Virus record (IMG/VR): IMGVR_UViG_3300042367_000228
Span: 186,001 to 250,000 of that record
Direction: 5' to 3' (one strand)
DNA length: 64,000 nt
Shown: piece by piece, positions 39,646 through 57,039 of the stretch
How positions within the stretch are numbered: position 1 is the first letter of the stretch
Layout: every line of letters begins with the position of its first letter
The notes under the pieces: model-generated
The model's input: the letters and a program-made list of their open reading frames with translations, nothing else
Told to the model about the DNA's origin: nothing
The model's database searches: none
Translations under genes and position numbers: made by a program

Positions 39646-39718
39646 GTGCGCTCCTGTGTAGTTATTAAGTATGCATATATTATATTATTGTACATTGCAA
39701 TTGTCAATAAATATTTAC

Positions 39719-40027
39719 ATGAAACCACGAGATTTAAACATCATACTTAATAGATTAAGACAGTCTGCTAAAAAACGCGGAATTGAATTTAATTTAAAAA
39801 CTACTGATTTAGACGAAATTGGAATTCCAATCTCATGTCCTATTTTAGGAATACCGTTACATTGGCATAATGGAAAAGCTGAAGACGATTCTTATTCTAT
39901 TGATAGAATAGATTCAAATAAAGGATATGTGAAAGATAATATACAGTTTATGTCTGTAAAGGCAAATCGCGCCAAAAACAACTTAACAAGCGCAGAACTA
40001 AAGTTACTTAGTACATACTATAAATAA
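39719..40027 (+). CDS. Small HNH-like nuclease domain protein
   Basis: AKKRGIEF.L, CPILG, SIDRIDSNKGY..DN....S..AN..KN; ATAAATA immediately upstream. Confidence 0.7.
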   Translation: MKPRDLNIILNRLRQSAKKRGIEFNLKTTDLDEIGIPISCPILGIPLHWHNGKAEDDSYSIDRIDSNKGYVKDNIQFMSVKANRAKNNLTSAELKLLSTYYK

Positions 40028-41142: not shown

Positions 41143-42555
41143 TTAGACCGCGTAGCGATCGTTCATAATTGTTTGTAACATAATTGCTTGTGGAGTAAAG
41201 TCATCCATATCAGCTGCAAGTACACTTGTCATAATACTTGGACTAAATCCACTTACTAATGCTGCACCTTTTGCATTATACTTAACTGGCACATTGTCAT
41301 GTGAGTTTAAGTTCCAAAATACAACTTGTGGTACTGTATACCCTGCATCTTCATACTTACGACGAATCATTTTTATTGCAGAATCATCATGTGTTACACA
41401 AGCATCAAATTGCATATCAGATAATATTAAAAGTATCTGTGGCATTTCTTCAACAGGTACATTACCATTAACTGCAACTTCTAAAATCTTAGAAAAAGCT
41501 GCATGTAAGTTAGTGCCCATTTGCCAATCACTTTTTGACATCTGCGCATACTTCTCAACTATATTACCTTTTAGTGTAACTAACTCTGGTTTAGAGCTAA
41601 ATGTTAAGAATGTGTCTTTAAACTTACCAGCATTTTTATCTGCTAAGTATATTCCTAAAGATAATGAAACATCCATACATGTAACAGTTTTGCTTTTACC
41701 TGCAGGACAGCCCATAGAACCTGATACATCAACTAATGGTAAAATACTTGCATCACCGACATAGTTAGGTAACGCGTCCCATTGTGCAATAATGTGTTGT
41801 TTTTCAAGTAGTGATGGTTGAGACCACCAACCACCTAACCCCTTAACAATTTCATATGGATAGATCGCACCTGCGTTAACTTTAACAGTTGGATCATCAC
41901 CTTTAACTAATTTAGCAATGTATTCAGCATACTTATCAGTGTGACGAGCAAATGCTTTTTTGTAGCGTGAAGAAGCTACAGATGGAACATGGCTAAAGTT
42001 AATAGCGTCCCATTGGTTAGCACACATTTGTGTTTCAACTACTTTAGTAAGTGAAACAAGTGTTTTGCGATAACGTTTTGGAGACCAACCTAAGTAGTTA
42101 CGTAATTGTACAGCAGTATCTCCTTTACGTGGAATCCATTTAGCAGCAAGTCCATTTTGCGCTTCTAATGCATCTTTAATTAATCCAAATGCATAGTCCT
42201 TTAAGTTTTGTGTTTTGAACACAAGTAAGTCATCGTAGCGACCGAGTTCAGGAACTTTAGCTGCAAGTTTTTTAGCAGCATCTGGATCTGAGTTTTCAAG
42301 ATGTAATAAAATATCTCTAAACAACTGACGTTCACCTGCACCGCCACGTACATCACGTACCCAAGCTGCAATACGTAATGCAAGATCTCTATCTTCTACA
42401 TAAGCAGCAACAAACTCTGGGGTGATGTTTTTCCCACGTGATGCACCTGCCTTAAAGAAGAGATCAACTAATGCACTTGAGGTTGATTTACGTGCTTTCA
42501 TACCGTTTTCAGTACGTGCTTCTTGATTTGCTATTGCTTCAATAAATGTTGACAT
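41143..42555 (-). CDS. TROVE/vWA-domain protein (Ro60/Rsr-like, DUF2828-type)
   Basis: N-terminal TENG..VDLFF..RDVRGGAGER..GRYDDL..AAKWIPR helical region; C-terminal vWA with MIDAS DVSGS, T (MGTN) and SDMQFD. Confidence 0.8.
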   Translation of the reverse strand: MSTFIEAIANQEARTENGMKARKSTSSALVDLFFKAGASRGKNITPEFVAAYVEDRDLALRIAAWVRDVRGGAGERQLFRDILLHLENSDPDAAKKLAAKVPELGRYDDLLVFKTQNLKDYAFGLIKDALEAQNGLAAKWIPRKGDTAVQLRNYLGWSPKRYRKTLVSLTKVVETQMCANQWDAINFSHVPSVASSRYKKAFARHTDKYAEYIAKLVKGDDPTVKVNAGAIYPYEIVKGLGGWWSQPSLLEKQHIIAQWDALPNYVGDASILPLVDVSGSMGCPAGKSKTVTCMDVSLSLGIYLADKNAGKFKDTFLTFSSKPELVTLKGNIVEKYAQMSKSDWQMGTNLHAAFSKILEVAVNGNVPVEEMPQILLILSDMQFDACVTHDDSAIKMIRRKYEDAGYTVPQVVFWNLNSHDNVPVKYNAKGAALVSGFSPSIMTSVLAADMDDFTPQAIMLQTIMNDRYAV

Positions 42556-45907: not shown

Positions 45908-46011
45908 AAATATAACTATTACTAAAACACTTGATATTTAGTGCTTTAGTAATAGCTATCATTTAAAAATGACAACTACTACACTTTCGTTAATGGAGAA
46001 AGTTTTCTGTT

Positions 46012-46315
46012 GTTTAATGGTGTGCTTTTACGCTAAAGACCTGTCTGCGACATCCTAATTAACTCTCGGACATGTTAAGTTTAACTATTAGGAAAAACAT
46101 CCTTAACATTAGGGGGTACCTCCCTCATCCGTTTAATATAGCAATCACTTTAGACTCGTAACAGCCATTAAGGCATATTGCCGGACTCTATATTAACGCA
46201 GTTACATACACTTACAGGTTGCTTTCGCACTGCCGTAAGTTTAAGTATCACTTTAGCAAAGTTTGCGGGTCACTCTTTAAATGATGGCTGCTTATAAGCC
46301 TACATCCCAATAAAC
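46012..46315 (-). ncRNA. 23S rRNA L11-binding domain (H43/H44) mimic with ~238-nt insertion
   Basis: GGATGTAGGCTTATAAGCAGCCATCATTTAAAGAGT ... GCGTAAAAGCACAC closed by GTTTATTGG/CCATTAAAC. Confidence 0.75.
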
Positions 46316-46693: not shown

Positions 46694-47344
46694 TTATTTG
46701 TTATATGTTATTTTTCTACCTTTATACCATCCTTCTGGAATATTAGTAGTTTTAGGAATGGATTTATTTTCAATTCCGTTTGTAATCCACATTTTACCAT
46801 ATTGAGAATTTTTATTTCCTTTTTGATGAATAGAACTTTTTTCACCAATAAGTTTCTTAGTATGTTCAGAATGTGTTTTACCATTAAATGTACCAGACCT
46901 ACCTTTTAATGAATCTGATATTTTTTTAGATATTAACGCAGCAAAAACTGGATCTTCTTTTTTGCGATTTTCAAGAGTAATTTTCCCTCGTGCAAAGTTA
47001 TCTTTTACATTAGAAGTATATCCATTATTTCCATACAAATTCTTTTTATTGTTGTTTATATAATCAAAGCCGCCACGACCGCCTATTTTAATATTATAAG
47101 TTCTAGTACTAGCAACAAATGATTCGTTTACTATTTCAGCTTCTTTATCATACATTTCTTTTGAATTATTAAAAACATGCAATATTTGTTTACTAAACTT
47201 TTCAATACCGTATTTTATTTTAGCTCGATTTAAAATCTTACCTGATCCCATATAATCATCATTTATGTCTAATGTTTTATGACAACCTATATAGATTTTA
47301 TTATTAATGATATTTGTAATTTTGTATATTATGTAATAAGTCAT
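46694..47344 (-). CDS. GIY-YIG homing endonuclease (Seg-like) with NUMOD3
   Basis: YIIYKITN.INNKIYIG.H..Y.GSG; TYN.K.GG.GG; GKTHSEHTK. Confidence 0.85.
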   Translation of the reverse strand: MTYYIIYKITNIINNKIYIGCHKTLDINDDYMGSGKILNRAKIKYGIEKFSKQILHVFNNSKEMYDKEAEIVNESFVASTRTYNIKIGGRGGFDYINNNKKNLYGNNGYTSNVKDNFARGKITLENRKKEDPVFAALISKKISDSLKGRSGTFNGKTHSEHTKKLIGEKSSIHQKGNKNSQYGKMWITNGIENKSIPKTTNIPEGWYKGRKITYNK

Positions 47345-47538: not shown

Positions 47539-47622
47539 TGGTGGAGATCCCTGGATTCGAACCAGGTGCCCAGAGGGCATGGATTTACAGTCCACTGCAG
47601 TCGCCAATGCCGCTCGACCTCC
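47539..47622 (-). tRNA. tRNA-Tyr(GUA)
   Basis: GGAGGTC/GATCTCC-A-CCA; GTGGA-CTGTAAA-TCCAT; long variable arm. Confidence 0.9.
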
Positions 47623-48050: not shown

Positions 48051-48154
48051 TATATTAGAACACACTACAATAACGGAGTCGAACCGTATACTAAATTGCG
48101 ATTTAGTAGTGAACCGCACTACGTTGATCAGACGCTGTAGTATGCTTTAATATA
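48051..48154 (-). ncRNA. tRNA-like RNA on a long closing stem
   Basis: Three hairpins including T-arm ACGG-TTCGACT-CCGT inside a ~20-bp terminal helix; no CCA. Confidence 0.5.
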
Positions 48155-48164
48155 ACAACTTTAA

Positions 48165-48250
48165 CAGAATAGCTTGCTCACCATTGAGCATTATCGCTAA
48201 GATAGCAATAATGGAATCGAACCATTAAATAATTTGCTGTGACTATTCTA
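48165..48250 (-). ncRNA. YrlA-like RNA (permuted tRNA domain)
   Basis: TAGAATAG-TC-ACAGCAA; T arm ATGG-TTCGATT-CCAT; closed acceptor TATTGCTA/TAGCGATA; D arm GCTC-AATGGT-GAGC; CTATTCTG. Confidence 0.8.
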
Positions 48251-48257
48251 AAATTAA

Positions 48258-48317
48258 CAGGATAGAATTTACTTTTAGATTAAGAGTCCAATGTAAATTG
48301 TTGCTGTTACTATCCTA
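48258..48317 (-). ncRNA. Y-like RNA carrying a Lys(CUU) anticodon stem-loop
   Basis: TAGGATAG-TA-ACAGCAA; AATTTAC/GTAAATT; TTGGA-CTCTTAA-TCTAA; CTATCCTG. Confidence 0.72.
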
Positions 48318-48323
48318 AAACTG

Positions 48324-48536
48324 TTAAGTCCAAACCAATCTTGCTATTGTAGCTTGCTTTGGATCTTTAAATTGAAATATTATTATGTGAGTAGTGTCTG
48401 TTCGTCCACAATGATATTTATAATCAACTTCGTGTACTAAATTGCGTTCCTTGCACCATTTTGATATTTCAAATGCTCTTTTTACATCCCCTGTAAATGT
48501 AGCAAATCCTTCTGCATGTGCGTAATCTGTATTCAT
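48324..48536 (-). CDS. Small hypothetical protein (C-terminal F..L.W family)
   Basis: AAGG RBS; ends FKDPKQATIARLVWT. Confidence 0.6.
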   Translation of the reverse strand: MNTDYAHAEGFATFTGDVKRAFEISKWCKERNLVHEVDYKYHCGRTDTTHIIIFQFKDPKQATIARLVWT

Positions 48537-48555
48537 AGTTACCTTATGTGTTTAT

Positions 48556-48679
48556 CAGAATGCATTTTATTTACCAGTGCGTCTACTCTTTCGCCAAATG
48601 CAATATTGCATTGCAGGACTTGCACCTGCACATCGTTAGATACCGGTTTCCATTAAATTATGATGCAGTTAGCATTCTA
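48556..48679 (-). ncRNA. YrlA-like RNA (permuted class II/Leu-like tRNA domain)
   Basis: TAGAATGC-TA-ACTGCAT; ACCGG/CTGGT stem; short variable hairpin; GCAGG-TGCAAGT-CCTGC; AATGCAA/TTGCATT; GGCGAAAGAGTAGACGC D arm; GCATTCTG. Confidence 0.8.
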
Positions 48680-48686
48680 AATATAG

Positions 48687-48805
48687 CAGGATCCGTTTAA
48701 TATACGCGCTCTAACCGTTAAGCTAACTGTTATTACTAACAGTGTAGGATTCGAACCTACATCACGTGCTTCAAATGCAAATTATTTTATGCTGTTTAGA
48801 TCCTA
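48687..48805 (-). ncRNA. YrlA-like RNA (permuted tRNA domain)
   Basis: TAGGATCT-AA-ACAGCAT; GTAGG-TTCGAAT-CCTAC; ACTGTTA-GTAA-TAACAGT; TA-GCTT-AACGGTTA-GAGC; GGATCCTG. Confidence 0.82.
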
Positions 48806-48818
48806 AAACTTTTAAAAC

Positions 48819-49061
48819 TTATTAAAAAGAACCTTGTAAAGTTTTGGTTTCATCGAGCTGATGCGGTCAACGTTTTACAGACGCCCTTTACTAGTTCCGC
48901 CAACATGACTACCATAGTAACTAGAATCAAAGCACTGTAATTGCCTGAAACTCTCACTCATTACAACTTGCAGTCTATAACTACCCACTGTGCCCCTTCC
49001 GGAGAACACGTTGTGCTTGCTTGCGCAAAAGTTTTTTCAGTAGTTGGGTTCTTTTTAATAA
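48819..49061 (-). ncRNA. Unknown ~240-nt structured RNA
   Basis: Perfect 15-bp terminal stem TTATTAAAAAGAACC/GGTTCTTTTTAATAA around a GC-richer ORF-free core. Confidence 0.55.
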
Positions 49062-49070
49062 ACTTTTTAA

Positions 49071-49147
49071 CAGGTTCCACATAGTGTTACAAATATGTAC
49101 GGAACATCTTTTCCGCACTTCTGCAATGTATTGCTGTAGGAAACCTA
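49071..49147 (-). ncRNA. Y-like RNA with single-hairpin payload
   Basis: TAGGTTTC-CT-ACAGCAA..GTGCGGAA/TTCCGTAC..GGAACCTG. Confidence 0.68.
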
Positions 49148-49160
49148 AAAAACTATTTAA

Positions 49161-49215
49161 CAGAATGTATTTTAGTCATATTCAAAAATGATGTTAAGTT
49201 GCTGTTAACATTCTA
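49161..49215 (-). ncRNA. Short Y-like RNA (possible Gln(UUG)-like loop)
   Basis: TAGAATGT-TA-ACAGCAA..TCAT-TTTTGAAT-ATGA..ACATTCTG. Confidence 0.65.
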
Positions 49216-49220
49216 AAACT

Positions 49221-49249
49221 ATTGTACTACGTAACTAACTGCTTGTCAA
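49221..49249 (-). promoter_or_regulatory. sigma70-type promoter starting at the first base of a Y-like RNA
   Basis: TTGACA-17 nt-TACAAT; predicted +1 falls at ~49214. Confidence 0.75.
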
Positions 49250-49282
49250 CACTTTTTTTTTAATTTTTTTAAGGAGTTTTAA

Positions 49283-49396
49283 CAGGTTTCACAATTTTGA
49301 TCAATTACTCTACCAACTGAGCTAATGTTACAAGTAACATGCAGGAATCGAACCTGCGACACACTGAGATATTAAATTGTTGCTGTAGGAAACCTA
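49283..49396 (-). ncRNA. YrlA-like RNA (permuted tRNA domain, Lys/Asn-like arms)
   Basis: TAGGTTTC-CT-ACAGCAA; TCAGT/ATTGA; GCAGG-TTCGATT-CCTGC; ATGTTAC/GTAACAT; TA-GCTC-AGTTGGTA-GAGT; GAAACCTG. Confidence 0.85.
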
Positions 49397-49407
49397 TTTT
49401 CTTTTTG

Positions 49408-50424: not shown

Positions 50425-51528
50425 TTACATTTCCTCTTGGGCTAAAAACCATGTACGTGCTACATATTTAACTCTTGTTATTACATCTTTGATTTCTAGA
50501 TGGCTAGCAACAAGTGTATCAGTTTCTTCTTTAACAACATCGTCTGCAATCCATTTTAAGAATACAGGAGTGCTTTTAGGTTCAATACTGATGTTGTTTA
50601 CTTTTAAGTATTCTAAACCTTGAGTAAGTCTAGATTCAGTAACTACTGTATCAGCAAACTCGTTAATGGAGTTAACTTTTTCTACATCAACACTTGCTAG
50701 TGTTTTAACTTTAGATGAACTGTGTTTTTCACCTTTAACTTTAAACATAAATCGTGATTGTTCATAACCAGGAGTAACACATTTCCAAACAATACCTTCA
50801 CCTACACCTTCAACACCAAAGTGTTGAGCAATTGGACATTGTTGTTCTACTGCAACAGTAAGATCCGCAAGCTTGTTTTGCGCAAGCTCAGGTTCGTTAA
50901 AGTTGATATCCATTGTGTATGTTTGGAAGTCATAAATTGTAAATAAATTTTCAGGCCATGCTTCGGTATTAAAACCTGCAATTTCTTTAGCATACGCAAT
51001 AGTATGCTTAAACTCAGTTGGAGTAAAATAAACGCGTTGAACATCTTCGTCTTCATTTTTACCAGCTGACCATGCAACAATGCCAAAGATAATAAACATT
51101 TTAGGAACATTACTAATTCCTACACCTTTTTGAACACCTTGCCCGCACCATTCGCCAAAGATAGAATAATGTGTTAAGTTGTAATCAACTTTGTGATGTG
51201 CAGCTGAAGTTAATAAGTTAATAAACGTTTCTTTATGTTGTTGTGCATATTTTGCCCAACCATAATTGTCATCATCTATTGTTAAAATACGTTCACGTGA
51301 TTGCGCCCAAAATTCATTATATTTAGGAAACTCGCAAGCAACGCTAGCATTAGTGCCATGTGCCTTAACAGAACCTTCAAACGTTAAAGTTGGCATAGGT
51401 GCAAATGGATCAAAGGTTGGTGCACCATTGTCATCTAACCCTTTAAAGGTAGCACGACTTTTAACTTCTCTAACTACTTGTCTAAATTGATTAATGCTGG
51501 GCCATGATTTGTGTACTTGTTTTGACAT
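50425..51528 (-). CDS. RNA ligase, Rnl2 family
   Basis: KAHGTN (motif I), QSR, FGEWCG (III), FG (IIIa), EGIVW (IV), FKVK (V) plus C-terminal Rnl2 domain. Confidence 0.85.
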   Translation of the reverse strand: MSKQVHKSWPSINQFRQVVREVKSRATFKGLDDNGAPTFDPFAPMPTLTFEGSVKAHGTNASVACEFPKYNEFWAQSRERILTIDDDNYGWAKYAQQHKETFINLLTSAAHHKVDYNLTHYSIFGEWCGQGVQKGVGISNVPKMFIIFGIVAWSAGKNEDEDVQRVYFTPTEFKHTIAYAKEIAGFNTEAWPENLFTIYDFQTYTMDINFNEPELAQNKLADLTVAVEQQCPIAQHFGVEGVGEGIVWKCVTPGYEQSRFMFKVKGEKHSSSKVKTLASVDVEKVNSINEFADTVVTESRLTQGLEYLKVNNISIEPKSTPVFLKWIADDVVKEETDTLVASHLEIKDVITRVKYVARTWFLAQEEM

Positions 51529-52451: not shown

Positions 52452-52669
52452 ACTTGCCTCTCTATAAAATTGTGTTGTGGTATTGAAAACCAATCTTTGC
52501 TGCAATAGCATTTTGGATTTATAGTTTGTCCTTGTGTTGGTATCGGCTGATTTGGCATATAATCAAATGCATCTCCGTACTGGTCTGAAAAACCTAACTC
52601 TCTATTAGTAATTGCAACTAAATGTCCTGAAGGACAAAATATAAAAGTACTACGAGGAACATATTTCAT
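52448..52669 (-). CDS. Small zinc-binding hypothetical protein
   Basis: CPSGH...CYC; overlaps both neighbours by ATGA. Confidence 0.55.
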   Translation of the reverse strand: MKYVPRSTFIFCPSGHLVAITNRELGFSDQYGDAFDYMPNQPIPTQGQTINPKCYCSKDWFSIPQHNFIERQV

Positions 52670-53112
52670 TCAAGTCTCACAATAACTACATCTCTATCAA
52701 TTGACCATTCAGAAAGAATTCGCATTATCTTAATTGGATCGCCACCTGCTAATCCGCAACCTATCATTGGAAATCCAAACTTAGTTTCTTTAGGAAAGTG
52801 TTTTCCTATATTATGTAATACATCTTCAAATGCTTGGTAATCAAATGGGGGACCAAATTTTTGTCCGTAATGATACTGTGTATAAGCATTAACTACTTTA
52901 CAACAAGGAGTTTCTGCAACAGTGAATGTTCCGAGCTTGGCTTTGTCAGCCATGTTAGTAGCACGATCAACTTCTGCAACTTGTGGCCATCGTATTGCAA
53001 GTTGTTTAGCAATACCTGCGCCCATTGTATTAAAACAATTACAACCATGCACAATAACATCAAATCGTTCTTGCAATGCTAGTTGTATTAAATCGCCATT
53101 TATTACTCTCAT
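52666..53112 (-). CDS. Macro domain protein (ADP-ribose binding/hydrolase)
   Basis: GDL, VHGCNC..MGAGIA, FPMIGCGLAGG. Confidence 0.88.
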   Translation of the reverse strand: MRVINGDLIQLALQERFDVIVHGCNCFNTMGAGIAKQLAIRWPQVAEVDRATNMADKAKLGTFTVAETPCCKVVNAYTQYHYGQKFGPPFDYQAFEDVLHNIGKHFPKETKFGFPMIGCGLAGGDPIKIMRILSEWSIDRDVVIVRLE

Positions 53113-53345: not shown

Positions 53346-54023
53346 TCAAGGTTTAAGTTTGCAATTATTTCCGTGATATCGTTTCATGCCATTAGATTTT
53401 CCTAATTTATTGCAATAAGGGCATATAATTATCTCCATCGGCGATGTTTGAAAAACTTTACCTTTTCTTACAGCACTCATTTTATTGCGAGTCTCTATAG
53501 ATGGAGATTTGCCTTTATTAGGAGGTATCCTTCCTTTATTTGAATTGCTGATTTTAGATTTGTGTTCTTCTGATAAAGGTTTTCCTTTTTTAGCTACAGA
53601 TAATTTAGATTTATACTCTATAGACATGTTTTCTTTAGCTTTACTAATTTTACTTCGAGTTTCGGATGTATGAGTTTTTCCTGTATTTGCTATAGCAATT
53701 TTAGATTTGTGTTCTTCTGATAAAGGTTTTCCTTTATGCATTACACTAACTGCTTTAGCAAATTCTTTTCTAATCCAACCATAACTTTTATTAGTAGCGC
53801 GACCAACTGACATCATATGTGCTGCTTTAATTAATTTATGATTATTTGGATATATCTTTATAAGTACTTGATGTGCTACATAATGAGCTTCAGGTGTTAA
53901 CTTTACTATATTAGTTGCATGATTAGTACCTCCCATACATTTGGGAATGATATGATGCTTTTCTGTATAATCTGCAATCATATCTTTTGCAGTTAATTGT
54001 TCGTATATTTTTTGATAATTCAT
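53346..54023 (-). CDS. HNH homing endonuclease with NUMOD3 repeats
   Basis: EKHHIIPKCMGG.N...N...LT..AH..AH; repeated KGKPLSEEHKSKI. Confidence 0.88.
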   Translation of the reverse strand: MNYQKIYEQLTAKDMIADYTEKHHIIPKCMGGTNHATNIVKLTPEAHYVAHQVLIKIYPNNHKLIKAAHMMSVGRATNKSYGWIRKEFAKAVSVMHKGKPLSEEHKSKIAIANTGKTHTSETRSKISKAKENMSIEYKSKLSVAKKGKPLSEEHKSKISNSNKGRIPPNKGKSPSIETRNKMSAVRKGKVFQTSPMEIIICPYCNKLGKSNGMKRYHGNNCKLKP

Positions 54024-55421: not shown

Positions 55422-56615
55422 ATGAAAATACAAGAAATTATAAGCGAAGCAATATCAGGTGCTCACTGGATACACGGATTGCACAATGGGTTAAATGATA
55501 TTTTAGAACAACCGTTAGGACTTACATTTAACTTAGAAACTATAAATGGATTTAATGCCATTGCAGTATACCTTAAAGATATGTCCGACGGCAGGATATG
55601 TAGTTTTTATGAGAAAATGCAACCTAGTGATATTATTTACATGTTAGAAGAGATAGTAAAGATAGCACATTATGTTATACAGCAGAAATATGCTAAAGTG
55701 TGCGCGGATGTAAGTGGAACAAACTTTTCTCATATTCAAATTCTACCTCAGTCTAATAATCCAGGAGCCCTCGCCTCGGCTGGTTATGACTATGTAACAT
55801 TCTATGAAACTGATAAGAATGCTTTCCAACATCGAGATATAGATATGCTAAAAGACTTGTTATATAGTACAGAAGCAATGACTGATGTTAACAGAGGATG
55901 GAGTAATGCTGAACAAAAGAATCTATATGTGCCTGTGATAACTGATATGTTTCAAATCGAACCTGCATTTAGAAATTTGAAACTAGGTGATTTTAGTTTA
56001 GCTGAATTCTTCTTAGACACTAAAAACATAGATACTATGGTTCACGAATTAGTACATATTAGACAACACGCACCTCAATCTAGATATAAAACTAAACGAG
56101 TATTTGATAAAGATACTAAACAGCACAAATTGGTTACTAAACAAGGCACTGAATTTAGAAGTAAAGTAGAGCCAAATCAAGAAAAGTTTTATAATGCAAT
56201 TAGAGATTTAGATAAGTCGCCTGAAAACTATAAAATATATAGTTCGTCGTTACAAGAAATACCAGCACATGCGCATGATGCAGCAGTTAGCGTTATACGT
56301 CATTTAGATTTTGCATGGGGCGGTTCGGTTGATGAATATGGCAGAGACGTGTCACATTTAAAATCTCAAGTAAAAGCACTTAAATTGATTATTGCTAATT
56401 TGTCTAATGGACCAACCGCGTTAAAAGATGTTTATGGTCACCCGATTAAAATTAGAAGATTTGAATATTTCAGTAAGACATTTAATCATCCTAACGATAA
56501 AAAGTTATATCCGGTATATAAAAAATTTGTAAAAATAATGAGTCAAGAATTAATCAATTATTACAATTATTGGAATGAAAAACTTATTAACCTTAGTAAA
56601 TCAAATGGTCAATAA
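55422..56615 (+). CDS. Hypothetical protein with HExxH motif and MKIQEIISE leader
   Basis: VHELVHIRQ followed by Y....QEIPAH (zincin-like). Confidence 0.65.
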   Translation: MKIQEIISEAISGAHWIHGLHNGLNDILEQPLGLTFNLETINGFNAIAVYLKDMSDGRICSFYEKMQPSDIIYMLEEIVKIAHYVIQQKYAKVCADVSGTNFSHIQILPQSNNPGALASAGYDYVTFYETDKNAFQHRDIDMLKDLLYSTEAMTDVNRGWSNAEQKNLYVPVITDMFQIEPAFRNLKLGDFSLAEFFLDTKNIDTMVHELVHIRQHAPQSRYKTKRVFDKDTKQHKLVTKQGTEFRSKVEPNQEKFYNAIRDLDKSPENYKIYSSSLQEIPAHAHDAAVSVIRHLDFAWGGSVDEYGRDVSHLKSQVKALKLIIANLSNGPTALKDVYGHPIKIRRFEYFSKTFNHPNDKKLYPVYKKFVKIMSQELINYYNYWNEKLINLSKSNGQ

Positions 56616-56638
56616 AAAAGCTGCCCTAAGGCAGCTTT
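56615..56638. terminator. Intrinsic terminator between tmRNA and convergent CDS
   Basis: AAAAAAGCTGCC-CTAA-GGCAGCTTT. Confidence 0.8.
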
Positions 56639-56641
56639 AGT

Positions 56642-56983
56642 TGTATTTTGGTTAATAAGGCATACATGCCCCAGAGGGGTAGGTTATTAAGCTACCATGT
56701 CAGCTGCTTCCAAAGAGAAGTCAACTGTCATATACTCGAATTTAGATGCTTTTGCGTCTATAAGTTTTGCGCTGTTTAGGACAGTCACCTCACCTGTTGC
56801 CGTCTCCATTATCTCACCAAGTCGAATCCAATTCATCCCCATTATAAAACACACTATCACTTCCCATTTGAGGGGCAGGAAGTCTACGGCTGTTGCCCCA
56901 CTCCGATACCTCTAATGTGTTTTATGGTGGAGATGTGGGGTTTCGAACCCCAGTGTTTGATGCCGTCACTTTGAAGGAATTAC
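56642..56983 (-). ncRNA. ssrA: Permuted two-piece tmRNA
   Basis: Acceptor piece ends GGGGTTCGAAACCCCACATCTCCACCA (56925); coding piece starts GGGGATGAATTGGATTCGAC (56840); G3.U70 pair; tag frame 56755-56687 AKASKFEYMTVDFSLEAADMVA followed by two TAA stops. Confidence 0.88.
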
Positions 56984-57039
56984 AACAATAATAAACACAC
57001 TAAAATATTTAATGTGCTTATTATTGTTAACTTGTGCAT

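Follow-up and report, generated by a model that had tools for sequence, protein, structure and literature searches.

A new structured RNA in the tRNA arrays of phages

Non-coding RNAs encoded among phage tRNA genes have been known since T4, whose tRNA region gives rise to RNAC and RNAD, small stable RNAs that are presumably matured together with the tRNAs and whose roles are still unknown (PMC3014915; PMC9697503). Other orphan RNAs with elaborate folds, ROOL and GOLLD, are often found in phages or prophages and next to tRNA genes and have functionally important loop-loop contacts, while bacterial Y RNAs of the YrlA type combine a 5'/3' closing stem with a tRNA-like module. Here we describe an RNA of about 250 nt that was first flagged in a 64,000-nucleotide stretch of DNA (positions 186,001 to 250,000 of the IMG/VR record IMGVR_UViG_3300042367_000228; hereafter the window, in whose coordinates all positions are given), and which belongs to a previously undescribed family. 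An earlier note, made from the sequence alone, had proposed an unrecognised structured RNA of about 240 nt on the minus-strand transcript, closed by a long stem and lacking the handle of the surrounding Y-like array. Our analysis supports this proposal, although two of the four internal helices suggested in the note are wrong, the fold includes a kissing loop and a four-way junction that the note did not contain, and the natural home of the family is a tRNA array, the Y-like array being special to the clade of this phage.

The window is part of a complete 372,016-bp phage genome with direct terminal repeats, in which the element is present as a single copy. Two 20-nt arms at 48814-48833 and 49047-49066 face each other across 213 nt; the inner 15 bp (48819-48833/49047-49061) are perfect, and whereas the arms are 90% complementary as DNA, all 20 positions pair when the minus strand is read as RNA, through two G-U pairs. 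In line with this strand assignment, the minus strand folds better (-67.3 kcal/mol, z -2.2) than the plus strand (-54.2 kcal/mol, z -1.4). The G+C content of the element is 0.40, against 0.29-0.33 in its flanks, and its interior has no conserved open reading frame: the only frames are 44-47 aa long, have GTG or TTG starts, and are broken in relatives by 1-nt and 4-nt indels. All neighbouring genes run on the minus strand, and the following features surround the element:
49221-49249, minus strand: sigma-70-type promoter TTGACA-17-TACAAT upstream of the array segment that holds the RNA
49065-49147, minus strand: Y-RNA-like module immediately 5' of the RNA (handle at 49132-49147)
48814-49066, minus strand: the RNA, about 253 nt between its outer closing pairs (covariance-model match at 48819-49061)
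48676-48812, minus strand: Y-RNA-like, permuted tRNA-like module immediately 3' of the RNA (handle at 48790-48805)

The array is real: the handle UAG-N7-ACWGCA occurs seven times on the minus strand between 48235 and 49396, against 1.3 expected in the whole window, and heads modules whose interiors are permuted tRNA-like. Two of these modules score 32-39 bits against YrlA, below the gathering score of 69 (32.3 bits for the module immediately 3' of the RNA). The promoter matches 11 of 12 consensus positions and both hexamers are conserved in four diverged relatives while the spacer varies, although its use is inferred. Five tRNAs, a permuted tmRNA (56596-57017), GroES, an RNA ligase and a DUF2828/DUF7788 protein (41143-42555; phrog_850, 'RNA-binding protein', E 1e-141) are encoded nearby.

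To determine whether the element belongs to a described family, we searched the 4227 models of Rfam 15, both at gathering thresholds and at E<=10. No match was found either for positions 48790-49090 or for a distant family member (positions 940-1184 of locus L040), and this includes the models for group I introns, RNase P RNA, SRP RNA, 6S RNA and tmRNA; in addition, the element lies between complete RNA genes and not inside one, as a group I intron would. ARAGORN does not call it. Blastn (word size 11) of two family members found nothing real in 50,697 sequenced phage records, including no T4-type hit, or in E. coli genomes; the only hits were six spurious 27-nt matches in Staphylococcus phages. 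We also found no paper describing the element.

We next looked for relatives. Loci around homologues of the neighbouring RNA ligase yielded three further variants (74-82% identical at the ligase level), whereas those of two distant ligase relatives (L010 and L012) hold neither the RNA nor tRNAs. Exact 17- and 18-mers from the 3' half found only the clade of the window, together with six chance matches to the 17-mer that were ruled out by inspection. Around homologues of the DUF2828 gene, an nhmmer search with the close-relative profile missed most distant members, giving one true marginal hit at the syntenic place (L040) and one false one inside a coding region (L091), but iteration added two more loci, L094 and L045. 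Interestingly, the closing stems of these members have quite different sequences but the same length. A degenerate pattern of the shared core then found 23 stretches in IMG/VR, which brought the distinct variants to 17, and a looser version found 64 stretches in JGI metagenomes, some with contig names that point to lake water, and none in one genome each of 185,579 prokaryote species. A covariance model confirmed all 64 at E<1e-23 and found no further copy in 1.1 Mb of related phage loci. In all, there are 81 copies, 58 of them distinct, with lengths of 240-255 nt; the copy in the window gives covariance-model matches of 221.6 bits with R1 and 173.1 bits with R2.

The fold was derived by hand from the first 17 variants, built into two covariance models, and evaluated by counting pairs on the 58-row alignment. 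On the minus strand it comprises the following elements:
49047-49066 and 48814-48833, minus strand: 5' and 3' strands of the closing stem P1
49039-49044 (ACUACU) and 48908-48913 (GGUAGU), minus strand: P2, which encloses P3 and P4
49029-49033 (AACUU) and 48965-48969 (AAGUU), minus strand: P3, which encloses three hairpins
49018-49027, minus strand: hairpin P3a with a GNRA tetraloop (UGC-GCAA-GCA)
48986-49015, minus strand: hairpin P3b with GGAA at its tip
48970-48984, minus strand: hairpin P3c with an AUA loop (GUAGUU-AUA-GACUGC)
48917-48964, minus strand: P4 arm, with the tentative base P4a (GUAAU 48960-48964/GUUAC 48917-48921) and a distal hairpin at 48927-48948
48935-48940, minus strand: P4 terminal loop UUACAG, the 5' half of the kissing loop
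48902-48907, minus strand: junction strand CAUGUU
48863-48900, minus strand: P5-P6 arm, with P5 (GCGG 48897-48900/CCGC 48863-48866), an 11-nt purine-rich internal loop (48886-48896; family consensus GAC-N-AGUAGAG opposite GG) and the P6 hairpin (48869-48885)
48875-48880, minus strand: P6 loop CUGUAA, the 3' half of the kissing loop
48852-48862, minus strand: P7, a small variable hairpin
48838-48848, minus strand: conserved tail ACCAAAAC-U-U between P7 and the P1 3' strand

Overall, 88.4% of cells pair, against 38-41% when the 3' partner is slid by 1-3 columns, the covariation score is 0.542, against 0.08-0.12 (about 0.11) for slid partners, and 67 of 79 pairs change on both sides; none of 500 shuffles reaches any observed measure. 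The alignment used for these counts was fitted to the model, which favours the structure, and the win-type and L045-type rows stay partly misregistered in P1, P2, P3 and P7. The first 17 variants alone gave the same picture, and independent single-sequence MFE folds of divergent members recover the 5' domain formed by P2, P3 and P4. Many pairs are G-U (for example, 43 at one P2 pair), which, together with an orientation that always matches the flanking tRNAs, fixes the strand.

Close inspection of the individual helices shows that P1 is 15-22 bp long in the family and differs in sequence between clades, yet 96% of its cells pair and all 15 modelled pairs change on both sides. In P2, 80% of cells pair and 4 of 6 pairs change on both sides, and a run of >=5 bp is found in 49/55 family members, against 37% when the partner comes from a divergent member. 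All 5 pairs of P3 change on both sides, with compensatory changes already apparent in the closest relatives (AU to CG, CG to GC), and a 5-bp run is found in 46/55 members, against 29% for the control. The P3a loop is GCAA, GAAA or GUAA in 15 of the first 17 variants, and its helix pairs in 95% of cells with 3 of 3 pairs covarying. P3b retains GGAA in its loop throughout, 76% of its cells pair and 12 of 12 pairs change on both sides; in relative L009 it is replaced by a hairpin of different sequence but the same form. P3c pairs in 97% of cells, 5 of 6 pairs covary, and its AUA loop is conserved in >=95% of rows. The distal helices of P4 pair in 82-99% of cells and covary, but P4a pairs in only 74.5%, and a crude partner-swap test did not separate it from chance. 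P5, which is 4-6 bp long, pairs in 100% of cells (2 of 4 pairs covary) and P6 in 92% (5 of 5 pairs covary), while a hairpin of different sequence is present at the place of P7 in all clades (74% of cells pair in the model alignment, 3 of 3 pairs covary). P1, P2, P5 and P7 meet in a four-way junction lined by two conserved unpaired strands, CAUGUU (>=95% of rows) and ACCAAAAC (eight consecutive positions conserved in >=95% of 55 full-length distinct rows), for neither of which could we find a conserved partner within the RNA. Of the helices put forward in the note, GTGTTCTCC/GGGGCAC (P3b) and CATC/GATG (P7) are supported by the family, whereas TGTAAT/ATTACA and CTAGTT/AACTAG are not: ATTACA is the kissing-loop sequence, GUAAU appears to pair with GUUAC in P4a, and AACTAG lies in a conserved internal loop. 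A D-arm-like hairpin within the P5 5' strand and internal loop, pairing of the conserved tail with the P3 strands, and a P6-stem alternative UGUAAA/UUUACA suggested by RNAalifold on close relatives are likewise not kept across clades.

Interestingly, the P4 and P6 loops are complementary over 6-8 nt. Whereas the five central pairs never vary (UACAG of the P4 loop is conserved in >=95% of rows), the two outer pairs covary, reading CG 29, UA 14 and UG 3 for one and UA 38, AU 13 and UG 4 for the other. Examples are GCAUACAG with CUGUAUGC, AUUUACAG with CUGUAAAU, CUUACAG with CUGUAAG, and GUUACAG with CUGUAAC. Covariation supports this kissing interaction but cannot tell an intramolecular contact from an intermolecular one.

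In the contigs with enough flank, the RNA has the same orientation as every tRNA called around it. In most relatives outside the clade of the window it sits inside arrays of 20-37 real tRNAs, and tRNA-Gly starts 6-7 nt after the end of the model in most lineages; in one lineage, tRNA-Met ends 2-3 nt before the RNA and tRNA-Cys starts 4-7 nt after it. The P1 3' strand ends 0-8 nt before the next tRNA in relatives, and in several lineages P1 continues outward almost to its first base. The element occupies one slot in a tRNA array, with the orientation and spacing of a tRNA gene, and it shares with tRNA a four-way topology of a closing stem plus three arms, but it has no T-loop or D-loop consensus, its closing stem is 15-22 bp, and its anticodon-like loop pairs with another loop of the same RNA. 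With respect to the other described systems, it shares the tRNA-region setting with T4 RNAC and RNAD, while blastn found no sequence similarity, ROOL and GOLLD are about 2-3 times longer and their Rfam models do not match, and YrlA is half its length and shares its genomic neighbourhood in the window, where the element itself gives no YrlA score.

Taken together, these data indicate, with a probability of roughly 0.8, that the element is a member of a previously undescribed family of structured non-coding RNAs encoded by very large uncultivated freshwater phages, which is transcribed on the same strand as the phage tRNA genes as part of a polycistronic RNA-gene array and most likely acts in trans as a stable, compact RNA. 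In the absence of any expression evidence, transcription, processing and stability are inferred, as are the ends of the mature molecule, which are deduced from the neighbouring genes. That this is a functional structured RNA seems very likely, and its release through the processing of its neighbours likely: RNase P cutting at the 5' end of the next tRNA would create the 3' end, and 3'-end processing of the preceding tRNA, or RNase III or RNase E cutting at the long A/U-rich P1 stem, would create the 5' end. In the clade of the window no tRNA abuts the RNA, so the RNase P route cannot apply there, and cutting in or beside the 20-bp stem (RNase III) or in the A/U-rich linkers (RNase E) is the likely route. 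The paired ends would protect the RNA from exonucleases, and since the conserved unpaired letters gather at the four-way junction and at the internal loop next to the kissing hairpin, we take them to be a binding or active surface, probably for a protein or RNA partner from the tRNA, translation or RNA-repair sphere during infection, although no partner has been identified and any one specific function remains improbable. We consider this a new RNA class, while noting that orphan RNAs in phage tRNA regions have precedents as a category.

Other readings appear considerably less likely. The location among Y-like modules, the long stem that pairs the ends, the nearby RNA ligase and the DUF2828 gene, which lies 6.3 kb away here and 6-7 kb away in three distant relatives, raise the possibility of a second kind of Y RNA, whose stem would be bound by this Ro-like protein and whose body would tether or gate another factor, as Y RNAs do for Ro60. 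This is doubtful: the handle shared by all seven modules is absent between 48806 and 49131, no YrlA or Y_RNA hit appears at E<=10, the P1 sequence is not conserved between clades, and in several relatives the RNA is not within 10 kb of the gene. Moreover, the protein family occurs in 705 sequenced phage records, a collection in which blastn found no relative of the RNA, and the protein has no relative by sequence in the PDB, so its Ro-like fold is not shown here. It is also possible, if unlikely, that the loop-loop pairing occurs between molecules to build dimers or larger RNA-only assemblies, as reported for ornate RNAs in a phage and tRNA setting (10.1101/2024.12.08.627333); the two loops differ from each other, precluding self-pairing of one loop, the RNA is far smaller than ROOL and GOLLD, and an intramolecular contact between two arms of one junction is the simpler reading.

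The multi-junction fold with GNRA loops and a loop-loop clamp, the concentration of conserved unpaired nucleotides at one junction and one internal loop, and the position in a transcript that has to be cut into pieces would also suit a ribozyme, in which the kissing loop docks the conserved internal loop onto a catalytic junction, much as the Varkud satellite ribozyme appears to do. However, no known ribozyme family matches, nothing in the sequence marks a cleavage site, tRNA-processing enzymes already explain the release, and such folds are equally typical of protein-binding and ligand-binding RNAs (cobalamin and lysine riboswitches also seem to be organised by a loop-loop contact, but no model matches and this RNA lies between RNA genes, not in the 5' leader of a gene). 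Similarly remote is a mimic or trap of the tRNA-Tyr anticodon arm, acting as a decoy for anticodon nucleases or the queuosine-inserting enzyme or capturing tRNA-Tyr through the P4 loop. Although P6 in the window has a 5-bp stem and a 7-nt loop, CUGUAAA, identical to the anticodon loop of the phage's own tRNA-Tyr and complementary to the P4 loop, the P6 loop is 6 nt in the L045-type clade and 9 nt in the L100-type clade, and the positions corresponding to anticodon-loop residues 37 and 38 vary and covary with the P4 loop, so that selection is on the internal contact and not on likeness to tRNA-Tyr. An active role of either kind, as a new ribozyme class or as a counter-defence RNA that neutralises host enzymes attacking tRNAs, is speculative, but the latter would explain why phages that carry their own full tRNA sets keep the RNA inside them. 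Finally, the perfect inverted repeat around a 213-bp core and the small overlapping frames could suggest a miniature transposon, an origin or packaging site, or a small protein gene, but this is very unlikely: there is one copy in 372 kb, the stem sequences differ between clades but stay complementary through G-U pairs, which would be mismatches in DNA or on the other strand, twelve further interior helices covary, and the frames are broken by indels in relatives.

Inspection of the sequence revealed additional features, located as follows (window coordinates unless otherwise indicated):

46265-46308 (-), within the ORF-free stretch 45925-46312 (-), and 16621-16669 of the relative L009: a hairpin resembling 23S rRNA helix 43
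48165-49397 (-): an array of seven modules
48060-48160 (-): a further tRNA-like element
47539-47622 (-) and 48869-48885 (-): the phage's own tRNA-Tyr(GUA) and the P6 hairpin of the RNA
885-925 of L040, a contig carrying a distant member of the family, and 18 other contexts of the family: a conserved element just 5' of the closing stem
56596-57017 (-): a permuted tmRNA
41143-42555 (-), 50425-51528 (-), 52666-53112 (-): an RNA-related gene set
46694-47344 (-), 39671-40027 (+), 53346-54023 (-): a homing-endonuclease-type ORF and two that look HNH-like by eye

The hairpin at 46265-46308 (-) is a near copy of 23S rRNA helix 43 (the L11 / GTPase-associated centre; core GGCUUAUAAGCAGCC), and in L009 it hits the Rfam bacterial LSU model at positions 1093-1148 with 29.8 bits. 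The hairpin opens a stretch of about 380 nt with no ORF of 40 aa or more, at least the first 180 nt of which are nearly identical in L009, and which folds with z -2.2. This is a second candidate structured RNA, or an rRNA mimic.

Each of the seven modules of the array is headed by UAG-N7-ACWGCA and closed by a short stem followed by GUUAAA. Several of them have a permuted tRNA-like interior (T-arm, acceptor-like hairpin, D-arm), and two give sub-threshold YrlA hits, while a 70-aa ORF with no family match (48324-48536) sits inside the array. The further tRNA-like element at 48060-48160 (-) has a GGUUCGACUCC T-loop, but is not called by ARAGORN or Rfam and lacks the handle of the array. Close inspection additionally reveals that the 7-nt loop of the P6 hairpin (CUGUAAA) is identical to the anticodon loop of the phage's own tRNA-Tyr(GUA).

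In 19 of 54 contexts of the family, a conserved element of about 40 nt lies just 5' of the closing stem of the RNA. This element is an 8-bp hairpin (CAGGUUGU / ACAACCUG) whose loop holds GCGG, which can pair with an upstream CCGC, and is followed by a U-rich run; it may be a pseudoknot, a processing signal or a terminator.

The permuted (two-piece type) tmRNA matches the betaproteobacterial and the permuted tmRNA models and has an unusual and long predicted tag (AKASKFEYMTVDFSLEAADMVA); it hints at a betaproteobacterial host. The RNA genes are surrounded by an RNA-related gene set comprising a DUF2828/DUF7788 'RNA-binding protein' (phrog_850), an RNA ligase (PF09414), and an ORF that, judged by eye only, looks like a macro domain. 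Finally, a homing-endonuclease-type ORF (GIY-YIG with NUMOD3) lies in the tRNA region, and two others nearby look HNH-like by eye.
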